Below are positions 3,019 through 51,921 of a stretch of 64,000 nt of DNA, piece after piece. Position 1 is the first letter of the stretch; every line of letters begins with the position of its first letter. The translations under genes and the position numbers were made by a program. This stretch comes from Mytilus trossulus (Eukaryota). The DNA lies in contig NC_086383.1 of the NCBI RefSeq assembly GCF_036588685.1, forward strand, positions 20,708,001 to 20,772,000, given 5' to 3'. A model generated the notes under the pieces. It made no database searches. It saw only the letters and a program-made list of their open reading frames with translations, and was not told where the DNA came from.

Positions 3019-4108
3019 TAATTTACATACGGACAGTCTATTTGAAGATTTGTGTGATAAGGATGATTGCCGTTATAACTATTATTGATTTCTAATCACC
3101 TACTAGTGTCATCAAACTATTTTACAAAAGAGAGAGACGTTGTAATCATCCTACTCGCTCCACACACTTAAAAGACTAAAAAACAGGGAGAAAGAGAGAA
3201 AAACGTTCGACAAAACATATATATATATGGTTTAGAACGAAAGATATTCTGATAATTCTGGTGGTGATTTATTAGCATTTGTTACTTAAATCTTTTAATT
3301 TCCTTAAATCAAATATGCATTAAACGAAATCTTTATGGAAATTTTTCAAAGAAAATTCTTCTTGCTGTCCAATAAAGGAAATCAATAGAGTGGAAGTACC
3401 ATTTGCAAGTTATCTTACTGCCCCCAGCCCAGCGTAAAAACAAAACAATATTCGGATTAAAGGGAATAAAAGGGTACATCAAAATGCTGTAGAATTACGA
3501 TATATGCCTATTTTGCATTTGCCGTTGTCATAGTTATATTTTAATACCCGCAACTTCAAAAGTGTAATAATTATAACATGTCCTTTAACTCCGTGTTGCA
3601 ACGGTTATGTCTAACTATTTTTTTGCGGAAAGACATAAAAATATTACAGTGTTTATCTTTTTAACCGGATCAGTGACAATAACTGGACACTTCATTGCGG
3701 AGTTTATCCCAAAACACCTATTTATAGATTGACTGGTCTGTGATGAGCGAACCGGTTAAACTCCACCCGTTCAAGTAAATTAAATCAAGTAATTCCAATA
3801 TGTTATCACACATTTGTAGCTTAAGAATGGTTGAGCTTATATTAGACGGAGTGCTTATATTTTCTTATATTCCAGTAAACCCTTCTGCGATAATAGGCAA
3901 AAGGTTTACACTACAAATAGTTTTTTTTTAATTCGTTTTCATGTGACTTCAATTTGAACCCTTGGCTTGAGTTGGAATACGCATGCATTATGCCTGTTCA
4001 GTTTTTTAAAGTAAAAGAATGTCAACATTGAAAGTGAAACAACAGTTATTCGTTTGATTGACTGATTTGATTCTCAAAAACTCATTCTTATACAAGGAAA
4101 ATGATAAA

Positions 4109-4660
4109 GGTGGCTCGCGGGTCTAAATCAAAATTTTATTTAATATAGGATTTCGCTATATTTTTCAACAAATGAACTTTATTTTATACTTAATCGAAAA
4201 ATGAAATAAAAAGATGAGGTCACCGTTCATCTAAGCTCACAATCTGCCTTCGAAAGAAGCATACATTTTTGTAAAGTAACTTTTTTTTTGTTGAGCTAAT
4301 AGAAAAAAAAAGGTAAGATCGAAATAAAAAAGAACAAAATTACATAAATTGCTCAATTTTACAAATGTTTAGTTTGAATACAGCTTGTTTGAAAATAATA
4401 ATATAAAATATAGATCACCGATGAGTTGAACAATATATTTCAATTTTAATGCCAAAAGTTTGCATTTTTGCACAAAACGTAGATACTTTGGAGTTTTCCC
4501 ACCGATATCAACATTTTAAAAGCCATCTGGGATTAACACAAATTGACTTTTTTAATAATTTGTGTACCGTATGAAAAAATAACAACTAATAAAGGTAATG
4601 GATAAAATTTGTAATGAAAAATAGTTTTTTTTCTCGAAATTTTTAGACCCTCGAGCCTCC
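4109..4660. mobile_element. MITE with TIRs and TTAA-like flanks (Kolobok-like)
   Basis: Left TAAA|GGTGGCTCGCGGGTCTAAA; right TTTAGACCCTCGAGCCTCC|TTAA (19-bp imperfect inverted repeats). Confidence 0.7.
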
Positions 4661-7067
4661 TTAACATGCATTTTTCATCTTTAGTTCGAAATGAGACAGA
4701 CCTAAGAAATTAATTTGCTCAAGTTGCTATCTATTTAAATTAATTAGATGGCGTCTGATTAAAATACACGCGATACGGTGATACATATTATCGAGCCCTT
4801 GCCTTGTATATTGGTTATGTCTAAATAAGAAAAAGACTAACAGACAAACATCTGTACACATACCACAACACAGTAAACTGAAGACTCAACAACCTAAACC
4901 AAATCAAAAACTGTTGGTGATCTTAGGTGGTCCTGAATGGTAAGCAGGTCCTGCTTAAAGCGAAGTCTTGAAAATATACAATATAAATAAAAAAAAACAT
5001 AACTAAGTATCCTTTTAAAATCAATAAAATTATACCTTATACCGTTAATGCATGACTGGCGTATAAAATGTTCATTGTGGTGTCCAGGATACATTAATTC
5101 TAAGAGATTTTCCTCGTTACTTATGTATAAAAAAAAGTTTATCATAATTCATAGGTAATATATCCACACCGTCGTAAATATTTAGTTATCAGTCATTGAT
5201 TAGTTTTGCATATTGTGTTGCACCTTTCCTGATTATTTTAATTGAAATCACTTTAAGAGAGTTGTATGAGATAACATGCTACTGACTTGGGATATGCCCA
5301 TATAAAATTCGGGTGCTATTTAATCGGTTAAAGTAAACCGCATCTCAAGGACACATGGATTTAAATATCAACCTATAATCATTTGATACGTACGCTTTTT
5401 CGTCAATAACACTGACACATATATTCATTGAAAAATACCAATATAAAAATTATTTTTGTAATGCAATGTTGAAGACGATACGCGTTAAAATGAGGAGAAA
5501 AAAATATGACAGGCAATATCATATAAATGTCAAATAAAGTGGAGATCATGTTACTTCAAAATTTAAAATAAAAAAAATATGGTTCACCAAGATTTTCAGG
5601 AATACTGATTTTACATGTTGTGCAAAGATTTTTTGATTTTTACGCGCCTTTATTTAAATAATATAACAGAGAGAAAAAAATGAAAATTAACATACAGGGT
5701 CACTGAAGAAAGGGTCACCGTACCGGTTTTCTTGGTACACCAAAACATGTTATTATCTATTTATAGATATGATTACAATTAGTATTGTCAAATCCTACAG
5801 TTTTGCCAAACCGGATTCTCAGATAATCGTTCTACCGATTAACAGGTTAACCGGTAGTTTAGTTTGATTTTTGAGGACCTTGTCTATAGCTCCCCACACA
5901 TGTACGTTTTTTTTATTCTGATACGATGAATTGAAATTTGTCCTTTCACATTACAAGGTTTTTTTGTGAGGATCCCATAAACCTTGCCTAAAATGGCGTT
6001 TTGTTATAATTTTAGATTAAAATTTAAAATATGATTCTTTATCTCGTCAAATTGAAAATGTCATAAAACAATGATTCTTTTATTTTCTCTTGATGCCCCA
6101 GAAAATAATGTGCAGTGTTTCAATTTGAAATGATTTAGCCTGATACTTGTTAAAATAAAGTATATACAATAGTTACACCAACGTTGATTTGCATTTCACA
6201 ATTTTGGGGTAGACATTTCGTTTAAAGTACGACAACGCCTTGCATGGTCCATTCAGATGTAGTTCTACGCCATATTAGAATAAATATAAAGAAGTAAATC
6301 GTAAAATTAAATAGGATTACTTATTTAAAGTTACTATTTGAAATAAAACCCGTGTATACTAATTACGTTTACTCAATATTTTGTCCTGATCTAATAGACG
6401 AGTTGTCTAAGTTTTAATGAAGTTTGTGTTTTTTGTTTAACAATAGCAATTAGTATACTGGACAAAAGGTCGGTCAAATTAATTACGACGATATTTTTAT
6501 ATAGATCAAAAATTTTCTCCACGTAGCGGGGATACGCTAATATAACCACTACACAACGGCTTTCCTTTGTCAGCCTAAATTCCATTAGCCATGGAGTGTT
6601 GATAGTGCTAATTGATTTTGAAAGAAAAAAATTAATGAACAAAATCATTTTACAACTGTTATGACAAAGTCTAATTATTTAATTCAAATGGAAATGAAAC
6701 GAACATATATATATTTAAAGAAAACATAGTCGCATCATCTCACCTTTTGACCCGTTCTCCATGATTCTGTGGTGAATTTTTTTATACAGAGCACGGTCTG
6801 TCAACTTCGAAAACAAACCTGAAAGTTCCAAAGTCTGTTGTTTCGTTGTATTCCCCTTATATTTGATGTGTTCCCTCGGTTTTAGTTTGTATCCCGGATT
6901 TGTTTTCTCTCTATCGATGTATGACTTTCGAACAGCGGTATAATACTGTTGCCTTTATTTCTTCAACAATCACTTAATGATCACTTGATGATATAATTAT
7001 TCGACTGTGCGTAATGGAATCATAATAAATGTAAAGAACGGTACACAGAAAATACATACCTTATAAA

Positions 7068-7420
7068 CAGAAGATGTAGTATGATTGCCAACTCTCAACA
7101 AGATACAAAAATGACACAGATATCAACAACTATAGGTCACAGTACGGCCTTCAACAATGAGCAAAACCAAAACCGTATAATCAACTATAAAAGACCACGA
7201 AATAACAATGTAAAACAAATATGTAACATACATACAAACGAAAATCACTGAGAGTGTGGTGGGGTTAAACATGTTAGCGGACCCCAGTCTCCCCTAATCC
7301 GGGACAGTGGTGTTACAGTACAACATAAGAACAAACTTAACAATAAGTTAAAAAGGCTTAACCCACCAGAGGAATAACAAGAAAGATACTACAAATAGGT
7401 GGACGTGGCCGGGTACTTGT
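7068..7420 (+). repeat. Copy of the dispersed AGAAGATGTGGTATG repeat family
   Basis: Colinear similarity to 958-1206 and to ~23593-23830. Confidence 0.65.
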
Positions 7421-8023
7421 AATTCAGACGCAAGCATAACTTACATGACACTATGTGTACATAATACAATAGTAATACAAAGTTAGACCCTATTTGAATA
7501 ATTTCACCACAAAAGCTCTTGATGACTGGCTTGAAATTTGGGTATTGACATGCATGAGTTTAAGTTATGTATTATCGGTGACTTTGGTTATAAAAAAGAT
7601 GATGTGGTATGTTTGCCGATGAGACAACTCTCCACAAGAGACCAAAATGACACAGAAATTACAACTATAGGTCACTGTACGGCGTTCAATGATTCTTACA
7701 TGTGATTAAAATTCACAAGTAAAAAATATGTGTAAAATATTTAAATGTTGTCATTTTAACTGTGCAATCACCGTAAATAATTGTTATAAATGAAAGATCT
7801 AACAGTTAGAGTTAATTGCATTGCTAACTAACAACTATACTTTACAATCTCATGTTCCTACAATTTTTCAGTTTGCATTTAGTCTGAAAAGGGCCTCCTG
7901 TTCACTTTCGTCTATATTGTTTGATATTCTTAATGATCTAAATATGTTTCTTTACAGATACGATTTTCCCAGGGCTGTTATCATTTATTGACCATCGTTT
8001 TCTAAGGTATTTTAGAAAATAAA

Positions 8024-8371
8024 ATGCTGCTGGAAAAAGAATTATCTGATTTTAATTCCGATATGTATTTGAACTTAATAATGGAATTTAACAATGATAT
8101 TGAATTCGGTGAACTCAATAAATTTTCTGAAGAAGAAGATTTGAAAACTTTAGATGTTGACCAGCTGATGAATCGTTTAGAAAAAAGCTTGTCAGTGTCC
8201 CTTGATAAAGTAGAAAAAATGTTACACAAGAAACTTGAGGCTTGTGATTTAATTCGGTTGTGTCATATTGGAATAGAGATAGCCAATGCTAAATTTGAAT
8301 CCAGTAAGAAACAAAGGTCAGCTGAATGTGACGGAAGTACACCAAATAAAAAGAAATTAATGGAAATCAGA
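8024..8371 (+). CDS. Putative first coding exon of the STAND-ankyrin gene (acidic helical, death-effector-domain-like)
   Basis: Open frame from ATG 8024; donor AGA|GTAGGT at 8372 (phase 0) matches the next exon. The start codon is uncertain: there is an acceptor TTTACAG at 7957 and an in-frame stop at 8003. Confidence 0.55.
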
Positions 8372-11300
8372 GTAGGTTAAGATTTATACAAGAAGTGTTT
8401 CAGTTCATTATTTCATGTACACTGGTTGAATTCATGACACAGTTGTCCATTGATCTAATATAGATATGATGTTTTACGATCATGATATATTTTTTGAAAG
8501 ATACGCAGCGTAAAGTTAGGGTAATGGAAAGTAAAATCACTCAAAAAAATGAACTATAAGGAAATTTAAATTGGAAAGCCCCTTACTAATTGGCAAAAAT
8601 AAAAGCTCAAACACATCAAACGAATGTATAACAGCTGTCATATTCCTGACTTGATATTAAGATGTTTAGTTATGTTTGAAAATATCTGACAGTTATTCAG
8701 CTTATGTATTCTTCCTTATAGTCTAAAGGTAAAATCAAATATTGTTTTTTTTCTTAAGAAAATAAGAAGTCTTTTTTCCTCGGTTATACAATTAAATAGT
8801 CAATAAAGTTAACTGAACAATAAGCAGAGAAATCCATATTATAATTTGAAAATTAAAGTATATTGACAAAAAATTATCTTAACTGTTGTTAACAAGATTC
8901 CAAAATCAACCATAAGAAATGTGTATCTGACGCAAATGTTACTTTCATCAGTAAAGTAAAGTAATAAAATCAGACAGGGGGTAGCATCCGTCCATTTCCA
9001 TGCAATTACTTTCGTACATTCATAATGAAAATTTAACATTTGATTTGACAACTTGATGGTGAATTATTTCATTGCACTAAAACTAAGTTGAAATGCCGCG
9101 AAATCAATCAGCTGATATTTAGCAGCTGTTGTACATAAAAATTTAAAATATTTTTCCTTCAGATTTTAAACCCGATACAGAATGCCATTCCGATCGATTT
9201 AGAGAGAAGATTAACCGAAATGGAATATTCGTCACATACAGGTAAGTCAAATTACCTCATTTCAATATTGAGTGTTGCCTAATTTATTTTGATATTTACA
9301 AAATGAAAGCAGGTAGTGATTGTATGTGCACAATATTTCAACATCAAATTCATTTAGAAAACCTACTTAAATAGTGCTTTTATTGAATAATATACAATAT
9401 TAGTCTTTTAAAGCTGTAAAAATGTAGTTTGATTGACTTCAGAAAAAAGTGATGTTCAGCATAAACGATGGCAATAACACCACAAGTAAATAATTTCAAC
9501 TGTATACCTTAACAAAGACAGCACACATGTTATCATAGCCATGAATGTTAACTTGACCTTTGACTTGACTTATGGTTGTATATGACATTTAGCTCAGCGA
9601 AACTCACAGTAAGTCGTTTCTTTAGACAGGAAGTGACATTTTGCTCGTTGGATATTATTCTAAAACATTTTCTACATGAATACGCTGTTTTTTCAAATTT
9701 AAATTCAATAAGTTAAACTCACTACACCAACACATATAAAGTATAACTTAATAAAGACAACGGTTGCATACCGCTATTTAAAAGCCATATTTCGATGAAG
9801 CGATACACATCTGCATAACATACTTAAACCGAGGGAACACATCAACTATAAAAGGAAAACATTTCCGCGACAATCCTTACTTCAAGTAAGTGTAAACGTA
9901 GTTTATGCTGAGACTGTACGATCGTTGAGAATGTAATAAAATAATCAATAACGATAGTACAAAATCTGTATCAGGTCCACCAGGAGATTTGGATGATAAC
10001 AAGAAAAGATGGCTCGTGGTTGGAATAGGTTTGCATAGTATCTTATCGCCAGCCTTACGAAAGTATGTGGAGCCTGTTCTTACCAACTTCTACAAAGCAC
10101 TCAAGCTATCTGATCAAATCGACAAACAATCTCATCCGAGATATCTTCGGACAAATGGCGTCAGAAATGTGTACCTTAATTATGAAGCAATCAATATGAA
10201 TAAGACAACGCATGGTTATCGACAACAACTTTATGATTACAAGGTACAGAATGCTGTTGACTTGTCGAAGTTGTTCCTCCCGACACACATGACACATTAC
10301 TCAGCGTTTGATGAATCATGTGATTCATCGGCTTTGCTTGGCTTGATCGACAAAATAGACAAGTTTCCTGGAAATGTGCGAACGGCTGCAAACGATGTAA
10401 GTTCTCATATGTCGAAAATTATTTTAATATACTTAATTCGGACAATTAGAGTTTTTGGATGGATAATATGTAGATGTATATGAATAAACACTATAAAGCC
10501 ACTTGAGTTAAAAAATAAATAAAACAAAGGACACAATTTACGATATTTATATTGAGTATCTGTGCTATGGAAATACAACAAAGTATATTCCCCAAAAACG
10601 TTGTTAAGTCCCTTTACGAATAAAATGATGAAATTTCCTTTCGATGCTTCCTCTTACATTTTCTACCTTTTTAGTTAGTTATTAATACATTGATTTCTAT
10701 AAGTATTTATCCCAATCTTTTTTTTTTACAATCTTTCACCCAAATGTCACACTTAACTAAGATGACCGAAATGCTAATGAAAACTGTTAATCAGCATTAC
10801 TGTTGGATTGGCTCATCATGATGAAATTTGAAATATAAAGTGTAAATTTCAAATTTTGTGTTACAGTGTAACCTTACTATCAGGATACAAGATTTTGCTA
10901 GAAATTTTCTATATGTACATTCTTAGAAGTTTACAAATTCTAACACCAATTCACAAGTTTTAAAAGAAGATATGTCAGATTTAACGCTTACTAGATGTAA
11001 AATACGAAGTACTATTTACGTTTAAAACTATGTATACTCTACTTTCTATTGAATTATGACAAAGCAATTAATATGATATAAAAAAATCCTTAAATCTCAA
11101 GCGTAAAGTTCTAGTTAACGTCCAACAACTACATTTGTTAAACATTACTGTGCCCATTTCAACAATATATATTCGTTACATGAAGATTGGAATGTTGGCA
11201 ATAAAAAAATCTCATATTTTTCTAGACAATGCACATGCATCGCATGCATATACTCACCAAACAGATATCAATTTATATTACATGTGTACTTCAGGTCAGA

Positions 11301-14300
11301 ACGACTATTAGAAATGAATGGGCTCACTGTAATTTCACAGTCTGGGATGATGCGAAGTATGTCCAGTCATTACAGCTAATTGAACATGTCATTTATCTTC
11401 TGAATTTAAATGCAGTTGAGAAAAAGCGAATGATTGAGGAACTAGATAAATGGAGAAAGAATGGTAATTAACTGTACTTTGGTTTATTTAAAAATATATC
11501 GATTACTCCTTGTATAACTGTTAACCAATTCATAAGCCATTTCGCTATTAACATTAACAAAATGAAAAAAAAATACACATACTTATTAAATATATCTAAC
11601 AAGTGTGGACACATATAATAGTGGATAATGGTTGTAAGGAAGTAGTTACTGAGCTTGAGTCATGATACATTTGGGCTGCTGAACTGTTTTAAGCATTATA
11701 TGAAAAAAGTGCAGGTGTTTTAAGCTTAACTACATTGTATAGTTTTGTTGGTGCTTACCACCCTAGTAGTACCTTTTGTACATGCTATGATTTGAATATT
11801 TATATTAGTTTTGATAATAGGCTGATTGTCCTGATAAGGACTAACTTTGCAATTTAGATTGTAATAAATGATTATTAAACTTTGTTAATGAACACAGAAT
11901 AAAATTAAACTGATCACAGATCGTAAATCAACACAAATCATTAAACTGATTAAATTGATTAAAAATGATACAGATTCAGAACCAATATGTATGATAACCG
12001 AATTTCAAATTTGGCCCAAAAATTACTGCAAATTTAAAAGTTATCATACATATTTTTAAATTACTGAAAACTTGACTAAGGAATAAGGTACTAAGAAAAA
12101 CAAGACAAATTTGACATCGAACAAGTTACCATGGCAATGAATCATGACCTAATTTGCATATTTTGTTAAATTTCGTGATTTTCCTTGTTTTTTCATCAAA
12201 TTTTAAGTATATTTAAGATTGAAAAAGTATGTGTGCACCCAAGAAACAACTTTATATTTGGTGAGATTATGCCAATAGTTATAATAAAGCTTCTGTTAAA
12301 TTATTTTGTTGTTTCTCAGCTGCGCAGGATGTTTCCTCAAAGGAAATAATGATAGAAAACTGCATAAATTCTATATTTTTCATCGTTTTTGTGAAAAAAA
12401 TACATATTATGACGTAATTGTGACGTCAGCAGATAAAAATCTTTCCGTTTTTAATTTATATTTCTTGACCCTATGCATTTCTAAACATTATGTGCCAATT
12501 TGAAATGGTTATCAAACATTTTATTTTCTTGGGCCAAAACTAGGCCTTAATGCCCCTACTCCTTTGTATCAACTACACATCAAGAATGAATATACTGGTA
12601 AAAATTCTTTTATTTCTCATTTACATACTCACAAAAGGAACAAGTTTCTTGCAAGGATACACCATTAGCTTTGAATTAGTCAATGAAATCAGTCAGAAGA
12701 TACAGATACTTGTGGAATATACTGAAGTTATATCCAAGACTGCTGATAAAGAATTTGGAAAAGTACATGAAGCTCTGATAGATATAGGGGAAACGCTCAG
12801 CCAGTATGACGAAAGAATATCAACGCTTGAAAATGTAAGTTACACACGAATAAGATCATACACAACATGATATGGTATTATTATTTTGTGCAGTTGGTTG
12901 TACATTTGTATGAACAAGGAATGTCTCTTAAAGGGTCTGAGCTTTTTATTTATCAATGTAGAGTTTTATTAACAGAAACGGTCATATTATAATATAAATA
13001 TTGTCACACGACATCATTGTACTAGTGTAATCATAACTCACATTAGTGTCAACGAACACTGTACACTCTCAGCAAATTGCTATTTGCACTTTATAAGTCA
13101 AAAAGTCCTATTCAAATATTTAGTACATTTGCGCATTTGATAGTGTTTATTTCGTCAATAGGGAATAGATTACCTGCCCTGGTTGTACAACGCGTCTTCC
13201 TTGCAAATTATCATTCTATATGTGTATGTTAGACACATGTATTGTCTAGATAAGTCTCATGCGTAAACGTATATGTTCGCTGTATAAGACAATTGAAAAC
13301 AAGAATTTCTTAAATATTTGATCAAATACGCATATTGCCTTCAATGTCAGGGTCAGTAAAATCTTTGCACTTTCAATAAAAGAGGGATAAAAGGTACCAG
13401 AGGGACAGTCCAAACTCATTGATGAAAATAAACTTACAACGCTATGGCTAAAAATAAAAAGACAATAGAAAAATAATAGTACAGAAGACAAAACATAGAA
13501 AACTAAAGACACGCACTCCACAAACACTCGGGGTGATCTTATGTGCTCTGGAAAGGTAGGCAGATCCTGCACCACATTTGTCACCCATCATATTGCTTAT
13601 GTTATTACAAATCCGGTAAAAAGTCTAATTCGGTATGTCACAATCATGAAAAAGGAAGGGTATTTTAGTAACGACATAAGGAACATATCTCATATCATCT
13701 GTGAAACAGTTATCCACAACGGTCAAACAACTAGTAATGGCGTCCGTAAAATTTACGTAGGGATGATTTCAACATCACCATTTGGAACTCTTGCTTAAAT
13801 AGCTTCCTTGTGATCAGCAATCCTATATCAAGGAAACATGATAGGAAATACAAGCCCAGGAATTTCCTTAGAACTGGAAAGTTGACAATTGGGAAGCTGA
13901 AATCATCTCTTTTAAAGTTTTGTTTTCAATGGACCATCATTGTCAATTTCTAGATGGAAGTCAAGATATGACGCAGACTCAATTTTATCTGAAGTATCCT
14001 TTATCTCTGGTTCGATGGGATAGATTCAATCAATAAAGTCACATAAAAGAGCGTACCTACCAAGACATGTTAGTGGTCTCGATCCTAAGGATTTCCTTGT
14101 AACTATGTATAGTTTGTTGTATGTTGTAGGATTTTGTGATATCGTTAAAAGGGTTTGAATTGGTTTGTGTGTCTTTTACCGAAGGGCAATTTATTTTACA
14201 AAAGGGTTCATACATGTATCTTAATAAAAACACTATACTCAAACAAAGGGTATTCACAGCACATAGAAGTTTATTCTATACTGTACACTCTCAGCAAATA

Positions 14301-17300
14301 AACATAGATATCAGAATTGACAATTTTTTAATTGCACCAAACGCCCGTTTCTTCCACAAAAGACCCACCAGTGACGCTCGAATTAAAAATATCCAAATAA
14401 AATTACGTAGTTAAAGAGCATTGAGGACCAAATTTTCATTAACATTATGCCGCATGCAATTAAGGTTACCTGTGCCCTAGTTCTTTAAAAAATAAAAAAA
14501 AAGTTTTGTAAACGGTCAATTTATAATTATGATCATACCAACGATAATTTATAATTATGACCATACCAACGATAATTCATGTCAATTCATAAATGCTGAA
14601 TACTAGGCTGGTGATACCCTTTGGGAATTAAGACCCGATCACCAGTGGGTATAAATAACCGTTACTCACTCTGTATATGTCAAATCACATTTTAAGTGTG
14701 AGTGCGTATTTAAAATTGTTTCTTTGACAAAGCTCGAATAGATAACCGCCTATTACTATACTGACTATGTTTATAAAAAGTCAGATAAGGATGCGATCAA
14801 ATAAATTTGCTCAACAGTTTATTTGTTAAGCAGTAAATTTTAATTGAAAATGATCTATCAGAGAAGGAAAATTTCTCTCTCAGATACTTTTACAGCGTTT
14901 CTTTCTTCCGAAATCAGTATTTTGGAATTAAAGTTAAGGAAGTACACCTCTCAGAAGACAAACATTTCTAGAATTGATTTTTTTTCCAAACCGGATTTTT
15001 GGGTTTATATGACTGTGAAACAAATAATTAGAGAAGAAAAAATCAGTTAATGGTGCACTTCATTTTTTGCTACGGCCATTTGAAAGTAACAAATTATGAT
15101 TAGTTTTCCATGTTTCATCAGTTCTACTTATTTTGGGGCTTTTATGGTGAAAAAACAAACCACAGTTCCACCATTCCCCCATCCTTTCAATTAAGACGAC
15201 GAAGACTAATCTGAACTAATTTAACTAATAAAAACTATAGTAGGTGTTAAAATAAGTAGTTTTGTCACATGTTGATGCTTTTTGTGTCAAATTTACAATG
15301 CTGTCAATTTTGTAAATTTGTGATTTTTCTCAGTTTTAAGAACAAAATCTAAGTTAGTTCAACCTATTTGTTATGAATTATTTAAAACATAAAGGTACCA
15401 GGATTATAATTTAATACGCAAGACGCGCGTTTCGTCTACATAAGACCCATCAGTGACACTCACATAAAAAAAGGTTATAAAGCAAAACAAGTACAAAGTT
15501 GAAGAGCATTAATGAGGACTCAAATTCCAAAAAGTTAAATCTATTACCGGGATAAAACAATCCTTAGTTTTTACCCAAAAAAATCAAAGATTTGCAAACA
15601 GGAAAGACATTTGAAAGTGATAAGGGACGTACATGATTTTGGTAAAATCATTTCTTGTGTTCTTTGTCCATTTTATAAAGAAACTGGGCTAAAAAGATTG
15701 ACTTGATTTGCAGTACAATTTGGACAAATTTATTACAAAACACATTCTTATTGTAGATACACTTTTTTTTACAAATTTGAGACTGATTATAACATTTAAA
15801 AAATTCGTTGATAGTTTCCACTTGTATCACATGTTTTGGAAATCATCCTCGAACAATATTTCAACAAGACTTAAACGTCAGAAGAATACATCCTTAAGCT
15901 TCCTACTTTTTTCTTTATCAAGAATTTGCTACAGATTGATGACGTCAAAGAAATATTTTTGGCAGAAAAATAAAATCAAACACCACATGCTTATAAATTG
16001 GTACGCTAAATTCACGTCTAGATGAGTCTCGTGATAACATGTACTTTGTATAAGATAATTCAAAGCTAGAAGATGTAGAATTGATAAAAGGTTGGGTCAA
16101 ATTTAAATGTATGCATAATGCTTATAGTGTCAGGAGTAGAAAAACCTTTAGTAATTTCAATACTTATTCATTTTATATACAATTCATTTAAATAAAATTT
16201 ATGATTTATTGCTACATTTATATTTATTGTCAGCACACAAAAGTGGACTATTTGGCTCATAAGACCTTTGAGGCCGGATTGTCCACCAACATTAGCACCC
16301 ACCAGTAGTCGTTACAACAGATACTATGTTTGTAATCTGTGCCGCATGACGCGTGTTTGGTTATACATGACTAACATGTGGCAGTCCAATCAAAGTTGAA
16401 GTTGAAGACAACTGACCGCCGAAAATTTCGAAACGAAGTCTCCATTCATTAGGCTAATCAATAACTAATCACAGCTAATAATCCTAATTTTCATTGACCA
16501 GATTCATAAAATCATACTACGTACAAGGATACCTTGGTAATCTCGAATATGACGCAAAGGTTCTTGGAAATGTCAAGTATATGTCGTCATGAAGTGCAGC
16601 TAAAATGCCTCTTTAATCTTTTCCAGAGAGTAGCTGTACAAGGAAACGCATTAAAGGAATATGGATCTTTATATGGTATGTTTCATCGCAAAACAACGAT
16701 CCTGCAATTAACTTTCTATTTCTTGAATATTAATACAGTTATGTTAAACATTGTTACGGTAAAAGATATTTGAGTTTTTGCAAACTGCTGAGTAGATTTC
16801 ATTACCAGTGCACTCTTCGCCACCGATGGCATTATCAGCATTAAGGTAAGAACTACTGTATTAACACGAGGTATTGTTGATGTGTTCTGTACACTCACTC
16901 TTCCAGCAACTGTTAATTTACCCGCAACAAAACAGTTTTTTGTGTTATCCATATCCATATCCATATGTCGTCTGTTTTTTTGTTTTGTTTAAATTATTTC
17001 GTTGTTGATGCTGTCGCGTAAAGTTTGAAAAGAGATTTCATTGAGAATACTCAGCATTTGACTGAGGACTAGAAATGTCGAATGTAGAATAAATTCTGAT
17101 AATTAAATACTACCACTTGATTGTTGTCACTGCTGGTTGACATATGTTTTCACATGGTTTTATAACTGAAGTAGTTTGAATTTGTGTGTTCACATACAAT
17201 ATCTTTAATGTTATCATGTTTTGTAGTTTTACTGTATAAAATACTGATATTGAAGTTAATAGGCCTAATTAATTTAATCTTCCAACTGTTTTGATTCGAC

Positions 17301-20300
17301 CGATTTCTTTTTTATTCTAAATGCACTAAGTTCAGGTCTAAAGGAAATATTTACCTTGTGTCTTCGTTTTTTATTATTCCAATCTCTTTTTTCTCTTTTC
17401 AGACTCTGATGTACACGAAATCAAGCTATGGAAGCAGGACAGTAAATATTTTATTAAAACAGACATAGTACCAGATATATTAAGAATATTAGAAGACAAG
17501 CATTGCGTGCTTCTGACTGGAGTTTCCGGAATAGGGAAAACACTGACCGCACAGAATATAGCATTGAAGTTATTACATGAATTTCAATATAGCATTGTGC
17601 CATGCGTGTCTCTTCACGATATTGCAACACGCTATAAAGAACATGTGCGTCAAGTATTTGTCGTCGATGATATATGTGGAAAATATATAGCAAATATCAA
17701 TATAATTGAAAACTGGAGAAACATTACGAATAGGGTAAAAAGTATTCTTGATAAGGGCATTACAAAAATATTGGCCACCTGTCGTACTGAGGTTTCAAAA
17801 GAAAAGATTTTTCAGCAAGCATTTGATTTATTCCATAAGAATGCGTACAATTTATCTGACAACTATTCATTAAAGGACAAATTAGTCATTGCTAGCAAAC
17901 ACCTTGAACATTATGACAAAATGTTACCAGACATTACAAATATTATTAACAAAAAAACGTTTTCCCCATTAATGTGCTTCCTATGCTCTAGACACAAAAA
18001 CTTTGATATCAATGAGTTTCTCAACAGTCCGTTCGATACATTTTGTAAAGAATGGGATGATTTGAAGTCCTTTGACAAAGAGAAATTTTGTGTTTTATTA
18101 CTATGTGTTATTCATAATGGAACAATTAATGATGACTTTTTTGATATTTCAAAAGATTTAGAAAAAGATGAAAAAAAGAAACTAAAAGACATTTTTGAAT
18201 GGTGCAGTTTAAACCGTGGCACATCTCGGTCAGCACTTCAATCCAAAATGAATGTCTGTATTGACACTTATTTTAGAAAAGTCAACAAGGAATTCAAAGT
18301 TTTACATGATAAAATGTTTGACTTTTTGTGTTCTTTCTTCGGGAAAACACTCCTCGACCCTATTCTCAAATATGCACATGATAAGGTCATATGCGAGCGT
18401 GTACAACTGGAGTCTTTACAGGAAGCACATGGATATTTTACAATTATGGTTTCGAAACATGATGAACACAAGTACAATGATAGGATAAAAGCTGACCTTG
18501 AAAACGGAAAGATACATTGGTGTTTGAACAATTCACAAATGAAATTTAAGGAATACAGGATTAAGATTCGAGATATCATAAAAGATTTAGAGATTAACTT
18601 AATAAGAAATTTGATCAACATCAAGGACGACAATGGGATTAACTCCTTCATTATTGCATGTTTACGTGGTTATGATGAACTTGTTGATTTTTTTATTTCT
18701 GTTGGAGCTGATGTTGACGGTCAGATTGGATTTTTCACACCATTAACAGCTGCGTGCCATGATGGACACTTGAAGACGGTTGAAATTCTACTTAAAGGAG
18801 GATCAAACATAGACAATGCTAATTCTCAAGGTGAAACACCACTGTATACTGCTTGTGTTGGAGGCCATTATAGTTTAGTACAACTGCTCATAGAAAAAGA
18901 TGCTGACATTAACAAACAAAATAAATATAGTCGCACACCTTTGTACACTTCGTGTATGTTGGATCATGCAACCATAGTTAGTCTTTTGATTGATAAAGGG
19001 GCGAATGTTTACCAATATAAGGATGTAATAATAGCTGCCACTCTAGGAGGAAACGATAAAATTGTCGAAAAACTAATTACAAATGACTGCTGTTTAAATA
19101 GTGTCGACATTGAAGGAAAAACCGCTTTATTCATTGCATGCGAAGAAGGTTATATTAAGATAGTAAAGTTGCTTATTGATAACAATGCTGACATTTATAA
19201 AGTTGATAGTCATGGCAATACGCCACTGCATGCCACGTGTTGCGCTGGAAACTATGATATAGTCAGTATGTTAATTTGCAAAGGTTCAGATATAAATATG
19301 ATCGATGTAGACTTAGAGACTCCTTTGCACAAAGCATGTAGGAAAGGCTCTCTAGGTGTAATACAAAAACTGTTGGATTTTGGGGCAGATATAAACAAGG
19401 CAAATGGAGATGTACACACTCCTGCACATATTGCAAAATCCGAGGGTGCAATTATGGATGAACACATTTTGAAATCTCTAGAGGAAAACAAAACAGAACC
19501 AACTGAACAGCAAAATTTAACAAATAGTAACAGAAAAATAGTTACCAACAATTTGATAAGGTTTGGGTGGACTCCTTTATATGAAGCTTGTATTAATGGA
19601 GACATAGAAACAGTCACATCACTCATCAGAAACAGAGCAAATGTGAACATGAAAACTGACTCTGGTGAAATGCCTTTGGTTGCTGTTTGTCAACAAGGCC
19701 ATGGGTTCTTATTACAAGTGTTGCTAGACAAGGGAGCTGACGTTGATGAAGCATTGTGTTGTGCTGTTCAGAAAGGTTACATTAGAACGATTAATATGCT
19801 TTTATATAAAGGCGGAGATGTTAGCTATAAAGGAGTTGATGGGAAATCCCTCTTGACATTGGCATGTGAACAAGGTTCAGTTGAGATAGTCAAAATTCTT
19901 TTAGGAAAAGGAGCCGATTTAAATGATGTAAATGGACAAACATTGATACACATTGTATGCAAAACAGATGATGATGATTTACTCAAGCTCTTACTAGATA
20001 TGGGTTTAGATCTGACCATACATGATGAAAACGGAAGATATCCACTTTTTGTGTCACTGGATAAGGGGTTTGATAATTTGTCAAAACATTTAATAAAACA
20101 AAGTTGTTCTATAGCAATATCAGAGAGAGACAAAAAAACAGCTTTGATATCAGCATTTGAAAGCGGAAATATGGAACTTTCAAAGTCACTTGTATTGAAC
20201 GGTTATGCAGAAAACTTATCGCAGTTTAATGAAATTATGTTATATCATGCGTGTAGGTTAGGACTGCGTGAAAACGTTGAGATTCTGCATAGAAATGGAA

Positions 20301-21547
20301 CTGATAATAAGACAATATATAAGTTTAAATATACTCTCATGATATTAGCAGACATTGGCGGAAATGATGATTTATCGGAGTATCTACAAAATTCAATCAC
20401 TTCCTCTCTCACAAATACGGAAAGACTGCGTATAGGAAGGCCAATTAATAATTATTGTTTAAGCTATGGTAATTATGAAGTTCAAATCCAAGCATGTATG
20501 AACGGAGAAATAAAATTGGAAAGGACCAAAAGAAACTTTTTTGATATATTCATCGAACAAAATGAATCTATTTGGTTTGAACAAACACCCTTATGTCTTG
20601 AAATTAGAAGGGGTCAATCGGATAGAGTTAAATTCCTAATAAAACATGGCGTAAATGTAAATTTGACTTTCGAAGATAGAAGTTTTGATGCCCCCTTTTT
20701 ATTGTTTTCCATGGCTGTTAAGTATGGATATACTCCGTTGTTTGCAGCATGTCAACGAAAATGTAATGAAATAGTTATTATGCTTTTGGAAAATGGAGCA
20801 AATGTAAACAAGGCGTTGTATGACGCATGCAGGGAAGGTTATTTGGACACTGTTCAATTTCTTCTACAAAAAGGAGCGGATGTTAATTCAATTGGTCGGT
20901 TTGGTCAGACAGCTTTGTATGCTGCTTGTATCGGCGGATACTCTACAATTGTAAAATATCTGATCGATCAAGGGTCTGTTATTGATACAAAAGTTAAATG
21001 CGAAAGATTTATTCACGAACCTACATGCCTACATGCTGCATATCAGAGAAATAATTATAAAACAGTACAACTTTTAATAAAGAGAGGGGCTTCTATTGAT
21101 ACGGTTGATAACTTTAATCGAACTATGCTAAATAAAGCGTGTTGGGACGGAAACTATAAAATTGTTGAAATACTTATGAATAAAGGGGTTGATATAAATG
21201 CCTCTGACTCGTATGGTGCTACACCTCTCGTATTAAGTGTATTACAAACAATTGAGGATAAACATGAAGAAAATGCCTATATTCGTGAAATGAGAAACGA
21301 TTATTCTTTTGATGTACATTTTTTTAATCAAGAGTATGTTACTGGATGGAATACATATAGTAAATTAGACTTCGAATCCAATATCAATAACCACTTTGAA
21401 GTGATTCAACTGCTTGTTGGAAACGGGGCCGATATTAATAAGGCTGATACGGAAGGCAGAACACCATTGTCATTAGCCAAGGAGATTGGGAATATGCAAC
21501 TAACTGAAATATTGTTACATAAAGTCCTTTTACAATGCAAAATGTGA
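8024..21547 (+). CDS. Multi-exon gene: DED-like + HEPN (RNEWAH) + coiled coil + nSTAND3-type NTPase + ~25 ankyrin repeats, ~1802 aa. Proposed join(8024..8371,9163..9241,9975..10396,11295..11463,12638..12834,16627..16675,17403..21547)
   Basis: All six introns are GT-AG with matching phases (0,1,0,1,0,1). The joined length is 5409 nt (1802 codons plus stop) with no internal stop. Walker A GVSGIGKT (17519-17542), Walker B VFVVDD, R-x4-H motif at 11310-11327, and ankyrin consensus TPLxxAC...G...V..LL..GA.VN repeated from ~18620 to ~21520. Confidence 0.8.
9163..9241 (+). CDS. Internal exon (ILNPIQNAIPIDLERRLTEMEYSSHT-G)
   Basis: Acceptor TTTTTCCTTCAG|, donor CAG|GTAAGT, open in phase 0 to 1; too short for the ORF track. 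Confidence 0.75.
9975..10396 (+). CDS. Exon encoding the N-terminal part of the HEPN-like domain
   Basis: ORF 9989-10483 (DDNKKRWLVVGIGLHS...FDESCDSSALLGL...AAND); donor GAT|GTAAGT at 10397. An alternative same-phase acceptor exists at 9984. Confidence 0.85.
11295..11463 (+). CDS. Exon with the HEPN catalytic motif (VRTTIRNEWAHCN...)
   Basis: Acceptor ACTTCAG|, donor G|GTAATT, phase 0 to 1; R-N-x3-H motif. Confidence 0.85.
12638..12834 (+). CDS. Exon encoding a coiled-coil linker
   Basis: Phase 1 acceptor (AAAG|, weak), donor AAT|GTAAGT at 12835; heptad-like LSQYDERISTLEN. Confidence 0.75.
13375..14060 (-). mobile_element. Penelope-like (Naiad/Chlamys-type) retroelement 3' fragment in intron 5
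   Basis: Minus-strand remnants IYPIEPEIKDT...SASYLD...KRDDFSFPIVNFP and LKSSLRKFYGRH, followed by a non-coding tail. Confidence 0.7.
14305..14650 (-). mobile_element. Degenerate retrozyme-like unit in intron 5
   Basis: Similar to 2590-2960; decayed hammerhead at ~14336-14377. Confidence 0.6.
15395..15602 (-). mobile_element. Retrozyme-like fragment in intron 5 with a near-intact hammerhead (15417-15458)
   Basis: Reverse complement TGTCA-CTGATGG-GTCT TATGT AGAC-GAAAC GCGC GTC-TTGCG; one core substitution. Confidence 0.7.
16627..16675 (+). CDS. 49-bp mini-exon (RVAVQGNALKEYGSLY-D)
   Basis: Acceptor CTTTTCCAG|, donor G|GTATGT. It supplies exactly the phase 0 to 1 change needed between the flanking exons. 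Confidence 0.65.
17403..21547 (+). CDS. Large terminal exon: nSTAND3-type NTPase plus ankyrin repeats
   Basis: Long polypyrimidine tract and AG at 17401-17402; the frame is open upstream of the ORF-track start (HEIKLWKQDSKYFIKT...). 1346-aa ORF with Walker A/B and ankyrin repeats; AATAAA at ~21703. Confidence 0.92.
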
Positions 21548-38906: not shown

Positions 38907-39692
38907 TTAAATTCCTAAATTTTTAGTTACTGTTAGACGTTCACTGATGTTATCTTTGACATATCCGTCCTTAGCCCGATCTGATTTCCAGCGACCATGT
39001 TTTTTGAAGATTCTATCTTCCACATGCGCATTTGCAGCAGCAGTGGCGCCTCCGGACCTCAAACTATGCAAACCAAAATACTTTTTGTCTAAACCAATAG
39101 ATGTTAAAGTAGATAACAGAATGTCTCTTGCAGTAGTATAAGAAAGCTTACCATTTCTTAATTTGTAACCATTTACAGATTTACAAAAAGAAAAAGGACG
39201 AAAAATCAAATCATTACTGTCCGACTTGATGTTTGCTAAATCTAAATATTTCATCAACATTTTAACGGGACATGTAATTTTGTCCGTTTTTGAAATGAGT
39301 ACATCTCTACCCTCACGGTAAATATCAGTTTTACTACTATCTATCAGTAAACTGATGTACGAATCATGAAAAACAATATTATTTCTTGTCAGATTTGCTA
39401 ATTCTGAATACCTCAAAAATCCAGCAAAACTTATAAGGCACATACATGCTATTCTAACATCTTTCAGATTAGATTTATCGTTACCATAAAGCATAAAGAT
39501 TTGATACAAAATTTCTGGTGTTATAGGTTCTTTCTTAACCACAATGTGTCCAATAGATCTCAAAGATCCTTCCTTCACAGAAATAACCAAATCCGATTTA
39601 CACGGATTTTCAACTCCGGCTAATCTATGAGCCCAACTTATAGCATAAAAAGCTTCATTTATGCTGCTAGTAGATTTACCAATATAAGTCAA
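38907..39692 (-). CDS. Tyrosine recombinase catalytic domain (copy 1); the N-terminal extension to ~39925 is frameshifted
   Basis: GFLRYSE (R), SKTD (K), HSLRSGGAT (HxxR), HGRWKS...GY (H, Y). Confidence 0.88.
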   Translation of the reverse strand: MTYIGKSTSSINEAFYAISWAHRLAGVENPCKSDLVISVKEGSLRSIGHIVVKKEPITPEILYQIFMLYGNDKSNLKDVRIACMCLISFAGFLRYSELANLTRNNIVFHDSYISLLIDSSKTDIYREGRDVLISKTDKITCPVKMLMKYLDLANIKSDSNDLIFRPFSFCKSVNGYKLRNGKLSYTTARDILLSTLTSIGLDKKYFGLHSLRSGGATAAANAHVEDRIFKKHGRWKSDRAKDGYVKDNISERLTVTKNLGI

Positions 39693-40184
39693 ATAAACTA
39701 AATACGATGCGACAGAAATAACTGAAGCAGGTAACGTGTTTGAAAAATTAATAGATAAACACTACTTACAAAAAGCGTTGAAAACATATCTATACTGTCG
39801 TTGAGTGTTAGCTGCTCTAGATGACAAACAAAGGAAGGTATCTGGTCTACCAGGTGCTGCATGGCTGGAGATTGAGACTGACGAAAAGAACCAATATCAT
39901 TCCATCTTCTGGTTTTGAAAACATCTGAAAAATGTGTTACCCAATCAAGGAGAATTAAACAAGTATTCATATAAATTATTATAATAAAATGCATATGACA
40001 TTAAACAATCAACCATGCCTACTACAATATCATACTACAACATATGATACTAGGGCCATGTCGCTAAACATACTTCATCTTTACATTCTCCACTGAGTAA
40101 TATGTACAAAGTAAAATCTCATTCACCATGTCTCTGCAATACCAAAATTGATATCAGGACCATGTCATTGTGAAACATCACAGA

Positions 40185-42130
40185 CTAGCGTCTAATCTAA
40201 CTGCGAGAACAGTTGATAAAAAAATTTCAGTTCCAAAGATACACTTCGGACTACTTCCTTTTGAATAGATTCTATTCTTTTCTTTAAATTCTAGCACATC
40301 TTTAACATAAGCTTTGTAAGTCAAGTTTTTATTAAAAATATATGACCAGAATGGCGCAGATACCCATCTTGGAACAATTAAAGACCCTTTAGCCTTACAG
40401 TAAATCAGATGTTTAATTGTGCGTATAACTGAATAAATAGGGGGGACAAGCCAATTATTTTCTCCTTTTCAATTTTGTGTAAACGCATCTACAGCTTCTG
40501 CGTTCGGATTCCAGAAAAGTGAGTTAAACCTTTTTGTCTTGTTATTCATCACGCTAGCAAACCTGTCAACAGTAAAAGGTCCCCATAAACTTTCTAAAAA
40601 TTCAAAAAATTCATTTGAAATTTGCCATTCCTCATGATCACTCATTTTGCTAATGTAATCTGCCTTTGAATTCAATGTGCGGGGAATCCATTGTAATTCA
40701 ATTAATATATTATGCTCTTTACAAATACAAAAAATAGAACAGGCAAGATTTTGTAAATCCTCCTTCATACTTCCAGCTTGTACTATACGTACACAATTTT
40801 GGTTATCAGTAAACCATTTTAAACTTTTGACCATAAATAGAGTACTAAACAACAAAAGGGCCTGTTCGATTGCTCTCATCTCTCTCCAGGTGGAGCTTTT
40901 ACATCTCTCTAATTCGTTCCACATTTTGTGAAAAATCTTATTTTCCAATTCTACAGTATAAGCCCCACAGGCTACATTACTAGCATCTGAAAATATTACT
41001 ATCGAAGAAGGGCTGTACATAGCCAATTTCCTTTTATTCAAAGTAATCACATTGGATTTCCAGAACTTAAGCTCATTCAAAATCTCAGCTGGATAAACTA
41101 TTTGTAATAATTTATCCCAGCTCAATCTTTGCACGATGCACAAGTAACAATATCTTGTCATTAATCTAGTCAAATTTCCGAACACGGGTGATAAAGAAAT
41201 GATCTTACCAGTCACTTGAGCTAATTGCATAGCAGAGAAAAACAAACATCTGTCTAAAATTTCATCTATAGACTGTAACAAATCATTTAATCTTCTTTCG
41301 GGAATAGAAATGCAGAATTGAGCAGAATCCCAAGTGATTCCTAACCATTCTAACTTTTGGGTAGGTTCAAAAACAGATTTTTCTACATTGACTAAAAAAA
41401 CAGCCTCTTTTAGTGATTTTTTGACAAAGTCGGAATCTTTTCGACATAATTTGCAATCCGAAGCCATTCCAAAACCATCATCTAAATACAAAACAATATC
41501 AATCGAATTTTGTCTCCAATATTTGACCATAGATCTCAAACATTTCGTAAATAAGTAAGGGCTAGAAGCTAGACCAAAAACTAAAACTGAAAAACAGTAA
41601 TACTTGTTATTCCAGGAAAAACCAAGAAACGTTTGTTGCTGAGGACAAATGTCGTAATGATGATAACCAGACTTTAAATCGAACTTAAACAGACAAGAAC
41701 TTTTTTGAAAAATTGATTATCTGTTTTCCAGTCTTCAAATTTAAATCTCTCTTTTTTGACGAATTTATTTAAAATTGAAAGATCCAATATTAACCTCTTT
41801 TTTCCGGACTTATTGGTGGCAACTGATAAAGGATTAACAATATAAGGCGTAAAGGGAACTTCATATGCACATCCAGAATCAACTAATTCTAAAACGGCTT
41901 TTTCCACAAATTCTGAGTTAGAAACAGCAGATTTATTGTTTTTTGTGCATACTAGGGGGAGGCAATAAAAATGGGATTACATAACCGTTTTTAATTGTAT
42001 CTAAAACAAAACATTAGCTCCAATCTTAACCCAAAAATCGTAATGTTTTGCAAGCCTGCCTTTAACACCTTTAAAGTTATGACTAGCAGAAAACTCTAAT
42101 TTTTCAAGAAATTGAACTTGTGACATAAAT
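40185..42130 (-). pseudogene. pol (RT, RNase H, methyltransferase-like) of copy 1, disrupted
   Basis: Split ORFs 41674-41907 and 40469-41539; 1-bp deletion near 41700 and a premature TGA at 40469 relative to copy 2. Confidence 0.85.
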
Positions 42131-42160
42131 TCGTCAAGTTCGTCGTTATTGCATTCAAAG

Positions 42161-42263
42161 CACAGGCACTTGTCTCAGAATTTTTTTCCCTATATACCTT
42201 ATTATAACACTGTGTTATAATAAGGTATATAGGGAAAAAAAAATTCGGAGACAAGTGCCTGTG
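42161..42263. mobile_element. 103-bp fully palindromic MITE with an 8-bp TSD (ATTCAAAG), inserted in the 5' part of pol
   Basis: ATTCAAAG|CACAGGCACTTGTCTC...GAGACAAGTGCCTGTG|ATTCAAAG; ~50-bp arms with a 1-nt loop. Confidence 0.85.
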
Positions 42264-42322
42264 ATTCAAAGCTAGAAGATAATAAACTTATATCTAGATA
42301 CTTATCATTAACAGTAACTGTA

Positions 42323-43105
42323 TCATTGCTGTTTGGATGGCTGGTAACTAGGTGAAGAAGCTGTGGCTGACTTGAAGTTGAGTGGGCAGTTTCTTTTCCA
42401 GTGACCATACTGCTTGCAGTAGTGACAGATGTCCATGGGGCACGGCTCACGCCGTGCAGTGCTGGTACGAAAGGGCTGTTGATATCGACTGAAGTCGTAA
42501 GCTGGAGGAGGAGCAGTGGCAGTAGCGATACTCCCAACTGCTGGAGAAGGTCTAGCTGTATACGGCTGTGGGCGGGTCTTTTTCTCCTTAATAGTTTTGA
42601 GGGCTCTAGTCTCAGCCTGGCGAATCTTTTTCTCGTCCTCGTCATTTTCAGCGATATCGTTACTTTCATATTCTCTAACCGTAGCCCATCCCCCAGTGGA
42701 GTTATCAGCGACCCTGATGAGTTTGTTTCTTTCTTTAAGTTTACATACCAAATCACCAGTAATAGAAGAAAAGGGAGAAGCAACAGATACGAGATCCTTG
42801 TGGATTTTGTTAAGGCCATCCAAAATGTTCTCATTAAATCGAAACTGAATACGGTTCCCTTCTGATTTGAACTTAATATTAGCCTCATCTCTGAATTTCT
42901 TAGATAAATTGTCTTGTTCTGACAGAATGTCGGACTTCAAATCAACAAGTTTCTTATCCAAATAGTCTTTAAAAAGGCCAAAAGTGTCTACTAAGTCACG
43001 GTTTTGATTAGCTTGTGAATTTGAAGCATTAAGACGTTCGGGTTGACCATGTAAGGGGTCCCTTAACAAATCTTCTTCATTCAGATCGAGCACTGGTTCG
43101 GACAT
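42323..43105 (-). CDS. gag of the YR retrotransposon, copy 1
   Basis: ATG at 43105 (MSEPVLD); FKSEGNRIQFRFN, LKERNKLIRVAD..GGWATVREY, and CHYCKQYGHWKRNC zinc knuckle. Confidence 0.85.
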   Translation of the reverse strand: MSEPVLDLNEEDLLRDPLHGQPERLNASNSQANQNRDLVDTFGLFKDYLDKKLVDLKSDILSEQDNLSKKFRDEANIKFKSEGNRIQFRFNENILDGLNKIHKDLVSVASPFSSITGDLVCKLKERNKLIRVADNSTGGWATVREYESNDIAENDEDEKKIRQAETRALKTIKEKKTRPQPYTARPSPAVGSIATATAPPPAYDFSRYQQPFRTSTARREPCPMDICHYCKQYGHWKRNCPLNFKSATASSPSYQPSKQQ

Positions 43106-43507
43106 ATCTTTACCTAAACTAAGCTGCCATACCTTGTATGCGTGTCTTGTATTTGTATATTTAACAATGGCACTCAATTGTGCGATTTTTTATTTTTTTT
43201 TTTATTGTTGTTAGATATACTAACCATGAGATATTGAATATTGATTTGGCATAATTTTGCCCCTAGATGTCTTTTTTTTTTGTATTTTTTTTACTTTGGA
43301 TTGATGTCTCATATAAGTCAACCCCTTTTCGAAAGAAGTATTATGTTAACGTCGTTACAAAACTTTGAGTTTTTGAAAAACTAAGGCTTTTCTACCTCAG
43401 GAATAGATTGCCTTAGCTGTATTTGGCTAAACTTTTATGAATTTTTGGTCCACAATACTCTTTAACTTCGTACCTTATTAGACCCTTAAAACATTTTTTT
43501 ATTCGAA

Positions 43508-51612: not shown

Positions 51613-51866
51613 AAATTCTGAGTTAGAAACAGCAGATTTATTGTTTTTTGTGCATACTAGGGGGAGGCACTAAAAATGGGATTACATAACCGTTTTTAAT
51701 TGTATCTAAAACAAAATCATTAGCTCCAATCTTAACCCAAAAATCGTAATGTTTTGCAAGCCTGCCTTTAACACCTTTAAAGTTATGACTAGCAGAAAAC
51801 TCTAATTTTTCAAGAAATTGAACTTGTGACATAAATTCGTCAAGTTCGTCGTTATTGCATTCAAAG

Positions 51867-51921
51867 CACAGCCACTTGTCTCAGAATTTTTTCCCTAAAA
51901 TTTCGGAGACAAGTGCCTGTG
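51867..51921. mobile_element. Shorter (55-bp) version of the palindromic MITE, same TSD
   Basis: Same termini and ATTCAAAG flanks; the hairpin tip is absent. Confidence 0.8.

Follow-up and report, generated by a model that had tools for sequence, protein, structure and literature searches.

A transcribed seven-exon Mytilus gene encoding a STAND (NLR-like) protein with a candidate HEPN effector domain and an ankyrin repeat array

Gene model and transcription

The stretch of Mytilus trossulus DNA analysed here (64,000 nucleotides, referred to as the window) corresponds to C11:20,708,001-20,772,000 of the genome G000, which comprises 1.30 Gb in 541 contigs. The window is AT-rich (~32% G+C) and contains zero N. 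Its plus strand carries a real, expressed seven-exon Mytilus gene encoding a protein of 1802 residues, in which an N-terminal domain of ~90 amino acids (aa) is followed by a probable HEPN domain of Swt1/DUF4559-like type with the motif RNEWAH, a coiled coil, an nSTAND3 P-loop NTPase, and ~24 ankyrin repeats.

Six collinear plus-strand segments were marked by tblastn with the M. galloprovincialis RefSeq proteins P0021 (1799 aa) and P0007 (1828 aa), which are paralogues or orthologues in that species. The seventh exon (E6) was spotted by eye in the list of open reading frames (ORFs), and all boundaries were read manually on the sequence (Table 1). A preliminary description of the locus had proposed seven exons joined in phase into one intact 1802-aa ORF, and the boundaries, introns, phases, and length checked on the sequence confirmed it. 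The exons summed to 5409 nt (1802 codons and a TGA stop), the introns were GT..AG in 6/6 cases, and the junctions were in phase in 6/6 cases (cumulative phases 0, 1, 0, 1, 0, 1, 0). The three split codons (GGT, GGA, and GAC) included no stop. In the protein search, the close homologues of the large ORF in exon 7 came from Mytilus in every case.

Four runs were mapped against positions 12100-17900. The joints 12834->16627 (E5-E6) and 16675->17403 (E6-E7), both GT..AG, were present in contigs of three runs from two studies (X15 and X16 from one study and X1 from another with a second species label). Two of the spliced contigs, X15 record 14 (346 nt) and X16 record 20 (456 nt), showed zero mismatches. 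The latter departed from the genome at 12637, which is the E5 acceptor, and ran on for 82 more letters, which fits a continuation into E4. The kind of the three runs is not recorded, and they were taken as RNA because the unique intron bins had zero depth and the exons were covered; depth within introns was confined to repeats. The spliced contigs link the upstream module to the large ORF. The refuting case set out in the preliminary description, transcripts in which the upstream exons form a gene of their own, does not hold for the decisive E5-E6-E7 link. Of the six junctions offered there for a transcript check, E5-E6 and E6-E7 were observed spliced, and those from E1 to E5 are supported by splice signals, phase, and the full-length models P0021 and P0007, which have the same exons. 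One further joint in X16 (16669->17405, with 8 extra letters) was rejected; its contig has 6 mismatches and was most likely transcribed from a paralogue.

The protein on record at this position, P0033, is 100% identical to the corresponding part of exon 7, has 1099 aa, and has only ankyrin matches in Pfam. Its first residue is a Met inside exon 7, and the public gene call therefore lacks the STAND and HEPN parts. The expectation that such a gene would be annotated only as an ankyrin repeat protein was therefore borne out for this record, whereas the RefSeq models of the sister species contain the upstream exons.

Intron 5 contains two repeats of very high copy number, which are probably short interspersed elements (Table 1). 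At the second of them, the summed contig depth was 4,000-13,000 in three runs, and reads of a raw RNA-seq run, X24 (2026), were also found there.

Table 1. Exons, domains, and motifs of the gene, followed by other features (window positions unless a contig is given)
Feature	Position	Strand	Description
Exon 1 (E1)	8024..8371	+	348 nt, phase 0 to 0; donor AGA/GTAGGT; tblastn P0021/P0007
Exon 2 (E2)	9163..9241	+	79 nt; linker segment; acceptor ...CCTTCAG/ATT, donor ACAG/GTAAGT; tblastn 83-84% identity
Exon 3 (E3)	9975..10396	+	422 nt; N-terminal three quarters of HEPN-like domain (long helix 1, insert, helix 2 with FDESCDSSALL)
FDESCDSSALL block	10307-10339	+	Exon 3
Exon 4 (E4)	11295..11463	+	169 nt; end of helix 3 with motif, then helices 4 and 5 of HEPN-like domain
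RNEWAH	11310-11327	+	Exon 4
Exon 5 (E5)	12638..12834	+	197 nt; long coiled-coil helix
Repeat in intron 5	13458-13845		Very high copy
Repeat in intron 5	15398-15591		Very high copy
Exon 6 (E6)	16627..16675	+	49 nt; linker from coiled coil to STAND module; joints in X15, X16, X1
Exon 7 (E7)	17403..21547	+	4145 nt = 1380 codons + stop; nSTAND3, helical extension, ankyrins
nSTAND3 (PF20720)	~17510-17911	+	Pfam match, exon 7
Walker A GVSGIGKT	17519-17542	+	Exon 7
Walker B VFVVDD	17654-17671	+	Exon 7
Helical STAND extension	to ~18617	+	Exon 7
Ankyrin repeats	thereafter to ~21520	+	Exon 7
P0033	18248-21547	+	Protein on record
ORF of 204 aa	209-823	-	No Pfam match at E<=0.001
DIRS-like retrotransposon	38907-43177	-	First copy
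DIRS-like retrotransposon	48985-52835	-	Second copy
Nearest paralogue	G000:C11:20182339-20184402	-	Outside window
DUF4559 ORFs (examples of L017-L022)	C2:38513643-38514284; C2:47022519-47023205; C9:34210587-34211267		Intronless ORFs in G000

Domains of the encoded protein

The motifs named in the preliminary description (the IRNEWAH region, FDESCDSSALL, and Walker A and B) were all located on the sequence. Its architecture of an R-x4-H domain, coiled coil, nSTAND3, and ankyrins on one transcript was supported.

The nSTAND3 and ankyrin assignments in exon 7 are certain. The nSTAND3 family matched with an E-value of 1.4e-19 and 70.7 bits (cut-off 27.2), and the repeats matched Ank_2 (E 7e-126) and Ank (E 6e-111, 16 stretches). 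Counting the LLxxGAxx/GxTPL motifs gave ~23-25 ankyrin units, in agreement with the ~25 counted previously. In the same Pfam search of exon 7, NACHT remained below threshold (E 0.06, 13.6 bits; cut-off 26.7) and LRR gave no match. The protein is NLR-like in layout only and falls outside the canonical NACHT-LRR definition. In a PADLOC search, the candidate model PDC-S73 (E 9.6e-12) was retrieved on the NTPase together with ankyrin-based models, and no Avs model matched. The earlier comparison with bacterial Avs proteins holds for the nSTAND3 family and the layout (as in Avs5), and does not extend to membership.

The region of exon 5 matched exclusively coiled coils in the PDB, and its equivalent in the AlphaFold2 (AF2) model of the homologue P0040 is a single helix (residues 234-295, a coiled coil of ~60 residues). 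Exon 1 contains the start codon, the conserved ~90-aa N-terminal domain (alignment A4), and then a basic/Ser-rich linker. The Death-fold families (DED, Death, CARD, and Pyrin) had no Pfam match in this exon at E<=10, and the atlas search returned no usable neighbour for it.

For the RNEWAH domain, phmmer with exon 3 alone against 1.84 billion representatives retrieved 288 clusters at E<=1e-3. As exon 3 lacks the motif, these relatives were retrieved independently of RNxW[AG]H, and R-N-x-W-[AG]-H was nevertheless found shortly past the matched region in nearly every member of sufficient length. In two alignments, A1 (43 sequences) and A2 (22 sequences), the invariant positions were R, N, W, and H of the motif, a W six residues on, and a few structural residues. 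The window retains every invariant family position and 13/15 of the nearly invariant ones, and the N behind the R conforms to the HEPN signature R-x4-6-H, in which a polar residue (N, D, or H) follows the R. In the C-D-x-S block upstream (within FDESCDSSALL), the D is at least 90% conserved and the S is invariant. The RNEWAH domain represents an unnamed family of bivalves and cnidarians with at least 288 clusters.

Two Pfam families were recurrently detected near this family. HEPN_Swt1 matched 21/43 members of A1 at E<=1 (best E 1.3e-5), on the motif region and in all cases below the gathering score; the match of P0183 (24.4 bits; cut-off 27.5) covered profile positions 47-112 of 115, motif included. 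DUF4559 (PF15112) matched 11/43 members of A1 (best E 1.8e-7), and P0053 of M. trossulus exceeded its gathering score (28.8 vs 27 bits). Exon 3 of the window matched DUF4559 with an E-value of 0.015 (15.2 bits), end to end on the first 139 profile positions. A weak HEPN_DZIP3 match was also found in P0152. The preliminary description had expected a DZIP3-like HEPN; no exon of the window matched that model, and the nearest entries were DUF4559 and the sub-threshold HEPN_Swt1.

Alignment of A2 with six genomic DUF4559 sequences by hhalign gave a probability of 83% (E 8.4e-6) over 159 columns, with R-N...H placed on RIRN...H. By this comparison, the RNxW[AG]H family is homologous to DUF4559, as a sister family and, by the curated threshold, not as a member. 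At least 18 DUF4559 ORFs were found in G000; they are intronless, ~300 aa long, and carry the motif R-[IV]-R-N-x3-4-H, a conserved C..C..W Cys-rich insert, and a hydrophobic C-terminus, with no STAND or ankyrin fusion. These features suggest that DUF4559 itself is a membrane-anchored HEPN family. A six-frame search of the genome with HEPN_Swt1 returned no match, which is expected because the domain is split and divergent. A PDB sequence search with the family profiles was also tried, and its hits, coiled-coil noise or a spurious USP7 MATH match only, were rejected.

The fold was examined using AF2 models of two natural homologues, P0040 (predicted local distance difference test score, pLDDT, 87.3) and P0078 (pLDDT 93.7), both of which are all-alpha. 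The order of elements is a long helix 1, an insert of ~65 residues, a short helix with D-x-S, the helix with R...H, and two more helices. In the P0078 model, the helices span residues 5-44, 112-121, 127-145, and 154-170, with the insert at 45-111. The C-D-x-S block lies at the start of helix 112-121, and the motif (residues 141-146) runs from the end of helix 127-145 (helix 3) into the next loop. According to the published description of HEPN domains (PMC3710099), helix 3 ends in the motif, helices 2 and 3 are separated by an insert, and helix 2 carries an acidic residue; the homologue models agree with this. In a structure search with the first model, the HEPN domain of yeast Swt1 (4pqz) ranked 1 among 48,161 chains (Z 7.3, root-mean-square deviation 3.9, 126/136 residues). 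The top 50 of a search with a domain-only model included the HEPN structures 5yep_B, 6vrc_A (Cas13), and 2hsb_A at Z 5.9-6.2. A complex prediction for two copies of the HEPN-like domain (P0040 residues 30-232), with the alignment not used, gave no answer (score 0.03) and is evidence for neither side.

Family expansion and other elements

The gene belongs to an expanded family. At least 58 exon-3-like segments were found in the genome, 55 of them without stops; four copies are found within ~650 kb of this locus on C11, and C13 carries many. Exon-1-like copies were fewer (16), and many of them contain stops. Relatives of the module were found in Mytilus, octocorals, and sea anemones with shuffled partners, namely nSTAND3, an NPHP3_N/NACHT-like NTPase, Roc-COR, Death, GIY-YIG, and a PARP14-type RRM. 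The similarity of the gene to its paralogues is mosaic, with the HEPN exons closest to P0021 (91% in E3) and the STAND region closest to P0001 (90%), and the ankyrin region is the most divergent, full-length identity being <=59% to any match. This mosaic similarity with divergent ankyrins is consistent with a sensor that evolves fast and with paralogues that exchange segments.

The nearest paralogue has an open exon 3 that is 88% identical, and an exon 1 that is 93% identical and has two in-frame TAA stops; it is likely a pseudogene or a copy using another start. The two DIRS-like tyrosine-recombinase retrotransposon copies in the window are near-identical, and each has a gag-like ORF with a CCHC knuckle, an ORF resembling reverse transcriptase/RNase H with a Dam-like methyltransferase region, and an ORF of the phage-integrase family.

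Interpretation and comparison with known systems

From the gene model, expression, domain content, and family expansion observed above, we consider it fairly probable that the locus is an intact, transcribed member of a lineage-expanded mussel family of cytoplasmic, NLR-like STAND receptors, whose RNase and receptor mechanism would follow established STAND and HEPN behaviour. The ankyrin solenoid, which is fast-diverging, would keep the NTPase off until a non-self or danger ligand is bound. Ligand binding would then lead to NTP-dependent oligomerisation. The HEPN domains at the N-terminus, which the coiled coil would already pair or space, would thereby adopt a dimeric arrangement with a composite R-N-x3-H active site. 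Metal-free RNA cleavage at this site would stop translation, viral or host, in the cell concerned.

Several points weigh against this reading. RNase activity and ligand-triggered oligomerisation are attributed to the protein by analogy with other systems, and the raw RNA-seq run X24 placed zero reads on the exons. In the exon-by-exon Pfam search, no exon of the window matched any HEPN model, and none of the HEPN_Swt1 matches in the relatives reached the gathering score. The modelled proteins are homologues with 66% (P0040) and 45% (P0078) identity to exon 3 of the window, not its own spliced protein. In the domain-only search, 4pqz fell to rank 15 (Z 6.8, 118/136 aligned) with generic helical bundles above it; Z values of 6.8-7.3 are within the range that chance helical bundles reach, and Foldseek against the PDB found nothing at E<=0.001 with either model. 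In addition, the HEPN domain of yeast Swt1 is considered inactive in the literature (PMC3710099).

The structure searches are compatible with a HEPN fold and do not decide it. The HEPN assignment is favoured because the independent sequence signal of HEPN_Swt1 agrees with the top structural match, and not because of the Z values. With the invariant motif, the DUF4559 and HEPN_Swt1 signals, and the AF2 models in its favour, the HEPN assignment made in the preliminary description stands as probable and falls short of proof; we judge it quite probable that the RNEWAH domain belongs to the HEPN superfamily, and we grade its catalytic competence somewhat lower. As a more tentative proposal, about which we are in two minds, the RNEWAH domain together with DUF4559 may constitute an unnamed, catalytically active HEPN clade. 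Marine invertebrates (bivalves and cnidarians) would use it as an RNase warhead, activated by proximity, on several switches, namely nSTAND3, NACHT-like, Roc-COR, and Death. On this view, the mussel gene would encode an animal equivalent of the bacterial Avs5-type STAND defence proteins, with an output resembling that of RNase L.

In one alternative, the architecture is unchanged and the HEPN-like RNEWAH domain has no catalytic role. It would sense RNA by binding it or serve as an adaptor for homotypic contacts, as has been proposed for the HEPN domain of yeast Swt1, and the output would come from another source, such as the exon-1 domain or recruited partners. The best structural and Pfam neighbour being a Swt1 HEPN regarded as inactive (PMC3710099), the presence of a separate conserved N-terminal domain, and the fact that catalysis is predicted from sequence and models all agree with this view. 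However, the R, N, and H do not vary even among relatives of ~30% identity from two phyla, loss of the motif is typical of inactive HEPN domains (PMC3710099), and the sister family DUF4559 retains it as well, which makes a non-catalytic domain unlikely.

A housekeeping scaffold, that is, a STAND ATPase with ankyrins of the ANKRD50, TANC, or NPHP3 type and not an immune receptor, would account for the RefSeq labels on relatives ('ankyrin repeat domain-containing protein 50-like' and 'phosphatase 6 regulatory ankyrin repeat subunit-like') and for an expression that appears low and was undetected in one RNA-seq run. It is less likely still: the family shows a large lineage-specific expansion including pseudogenised copies, mosaic paralogue similarity with fast repeat divergence, and a HEPN-like module shuffled among partners of Death, GIY-YIG, Roc-COR, and NACHT-like type, all of which typify conflict systems (PMC3710099, PMC8195603). 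That the upstream exons and the large ankyrin ORF are two genes, whose open segments add up to an 1802-aa frame by chance, is scarcely credible: the recorded protein covers only the 1099-aa ankyrin part, and introns 5 (3.8 kb) and 6 (0.7 kb) are long and repeat-filled, but zero-mismatch contigs span E5-E6-E7 over two GT..AG introns, such joints occur in three runs, 6/6 junctions are in phase, and RefSeq homologues have the identical layout.

The concept of an NLR-like receptor with a HEPN effector in bivalves, of which the mussel gene with its putative RNase would be a further case, is already published (PMC3710099, PMC9646362, PMC8195603). Fusions of DZIP3-type HEPN domains to NACHT, ankyrin, Death, and LRR, expanded in oyster and Nematostella, have been described, as have expansions of active Swt1-family HEPN domains in Daphnia (PMC3710099; Anantharaman 2013). 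In a pearl oyster, >50 HEPN-NACHT-repeat genes were reported and proposed to combine pathogen sensing with RNA degradation (PMC9646362; Takeuchi 2022), and HEPN, STAND, and ankyrin modules occur in bivalve expansions (PMC8195603). The mussel protein is like these bivalve and cnidarian proteins (DZIP3/hRUL138-like, PF18738; PMC3710099, PMC9646362) in its N-terminal R-x4-H with N after R, STAND NTPase, and C-terminal repeats, and likewise in a large bivalve lineage-specific expansion and a predicted RNA-degrading role in innate immunity. It differs from them in that its HEPN-like domain has no PF18738 match and groups with DUF4559 and Swt1-like HEPN, and in having nSTAND3 instead of NACHT, an intervening coiled coil, and ankyrin repeats.

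With DUF4559, the gene shares the layout of the homologous domain and a helical region behind it, with R-N-x3-4-H at the equivalent place, whereas the DUF4559 genes of this genome are short intronless ORFs with the Cys-rich insert and the mussel gene is a multi-exon fusion. Swt1-like HEPN (PF18731, 4pqz) is the best structural match in one search and gives recurrent sub-threshold Pfam matches on the motif region, but the yeast Swt1 HEPN is without the catalytic motif, is fused to PIN, and has no STAND context. RNase L also combines an ankyrin ligand sensor with a dimerisation-activated RNase of the HEPN superfamily in antiviral defence (PMC3710099), properties that are predicted on the mussel side. 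Its domain order is the reverse, a pseudokinase takes the place of the STAND NTPase as the switch, and its KEN domain is a circularly permuted HEPN.

The mussel protein is set apart from the published receptors by its unnamed HEPN subfamily near DUF4559 and Swt1-like HEPN, by an NTPase of nSTAND3 type, by the coiled coil between effector and NTPase, and by ankyrins as the putative sensor. HEPN-effector STAND receptors are plentiful in bivalve and cnidarian genomes, and the present locus is a clean, intact, and transcribed example. We know of no functional tests of such receptors from bivalves or cnidarians. Counts based on Pfam would miss part of the repertoire because the effector family is not labelled as HEPN, its nearest entry, DUF4559, being of 'unknown function'.

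The bacterial Avs5 proteins, which are SIR2-nSTAND3-TPR proteins carrying PF20720 (bioRxiv 10.1101/2025.07.08.663546), have the same tripartite effector-STAND-repeat layout and the same nSTAND3 NTPase family as the mussel protein. They differ from it in having a SIR2 effector and not HEPN, in their TPR, Sel1, or PPR repeats, and in their prokaryotic anti-phage function. The shared nSTAND3 ties the animal receptor to Avs5, and it bears on the extent to which bacteria and animals share antiviral STAND modules.

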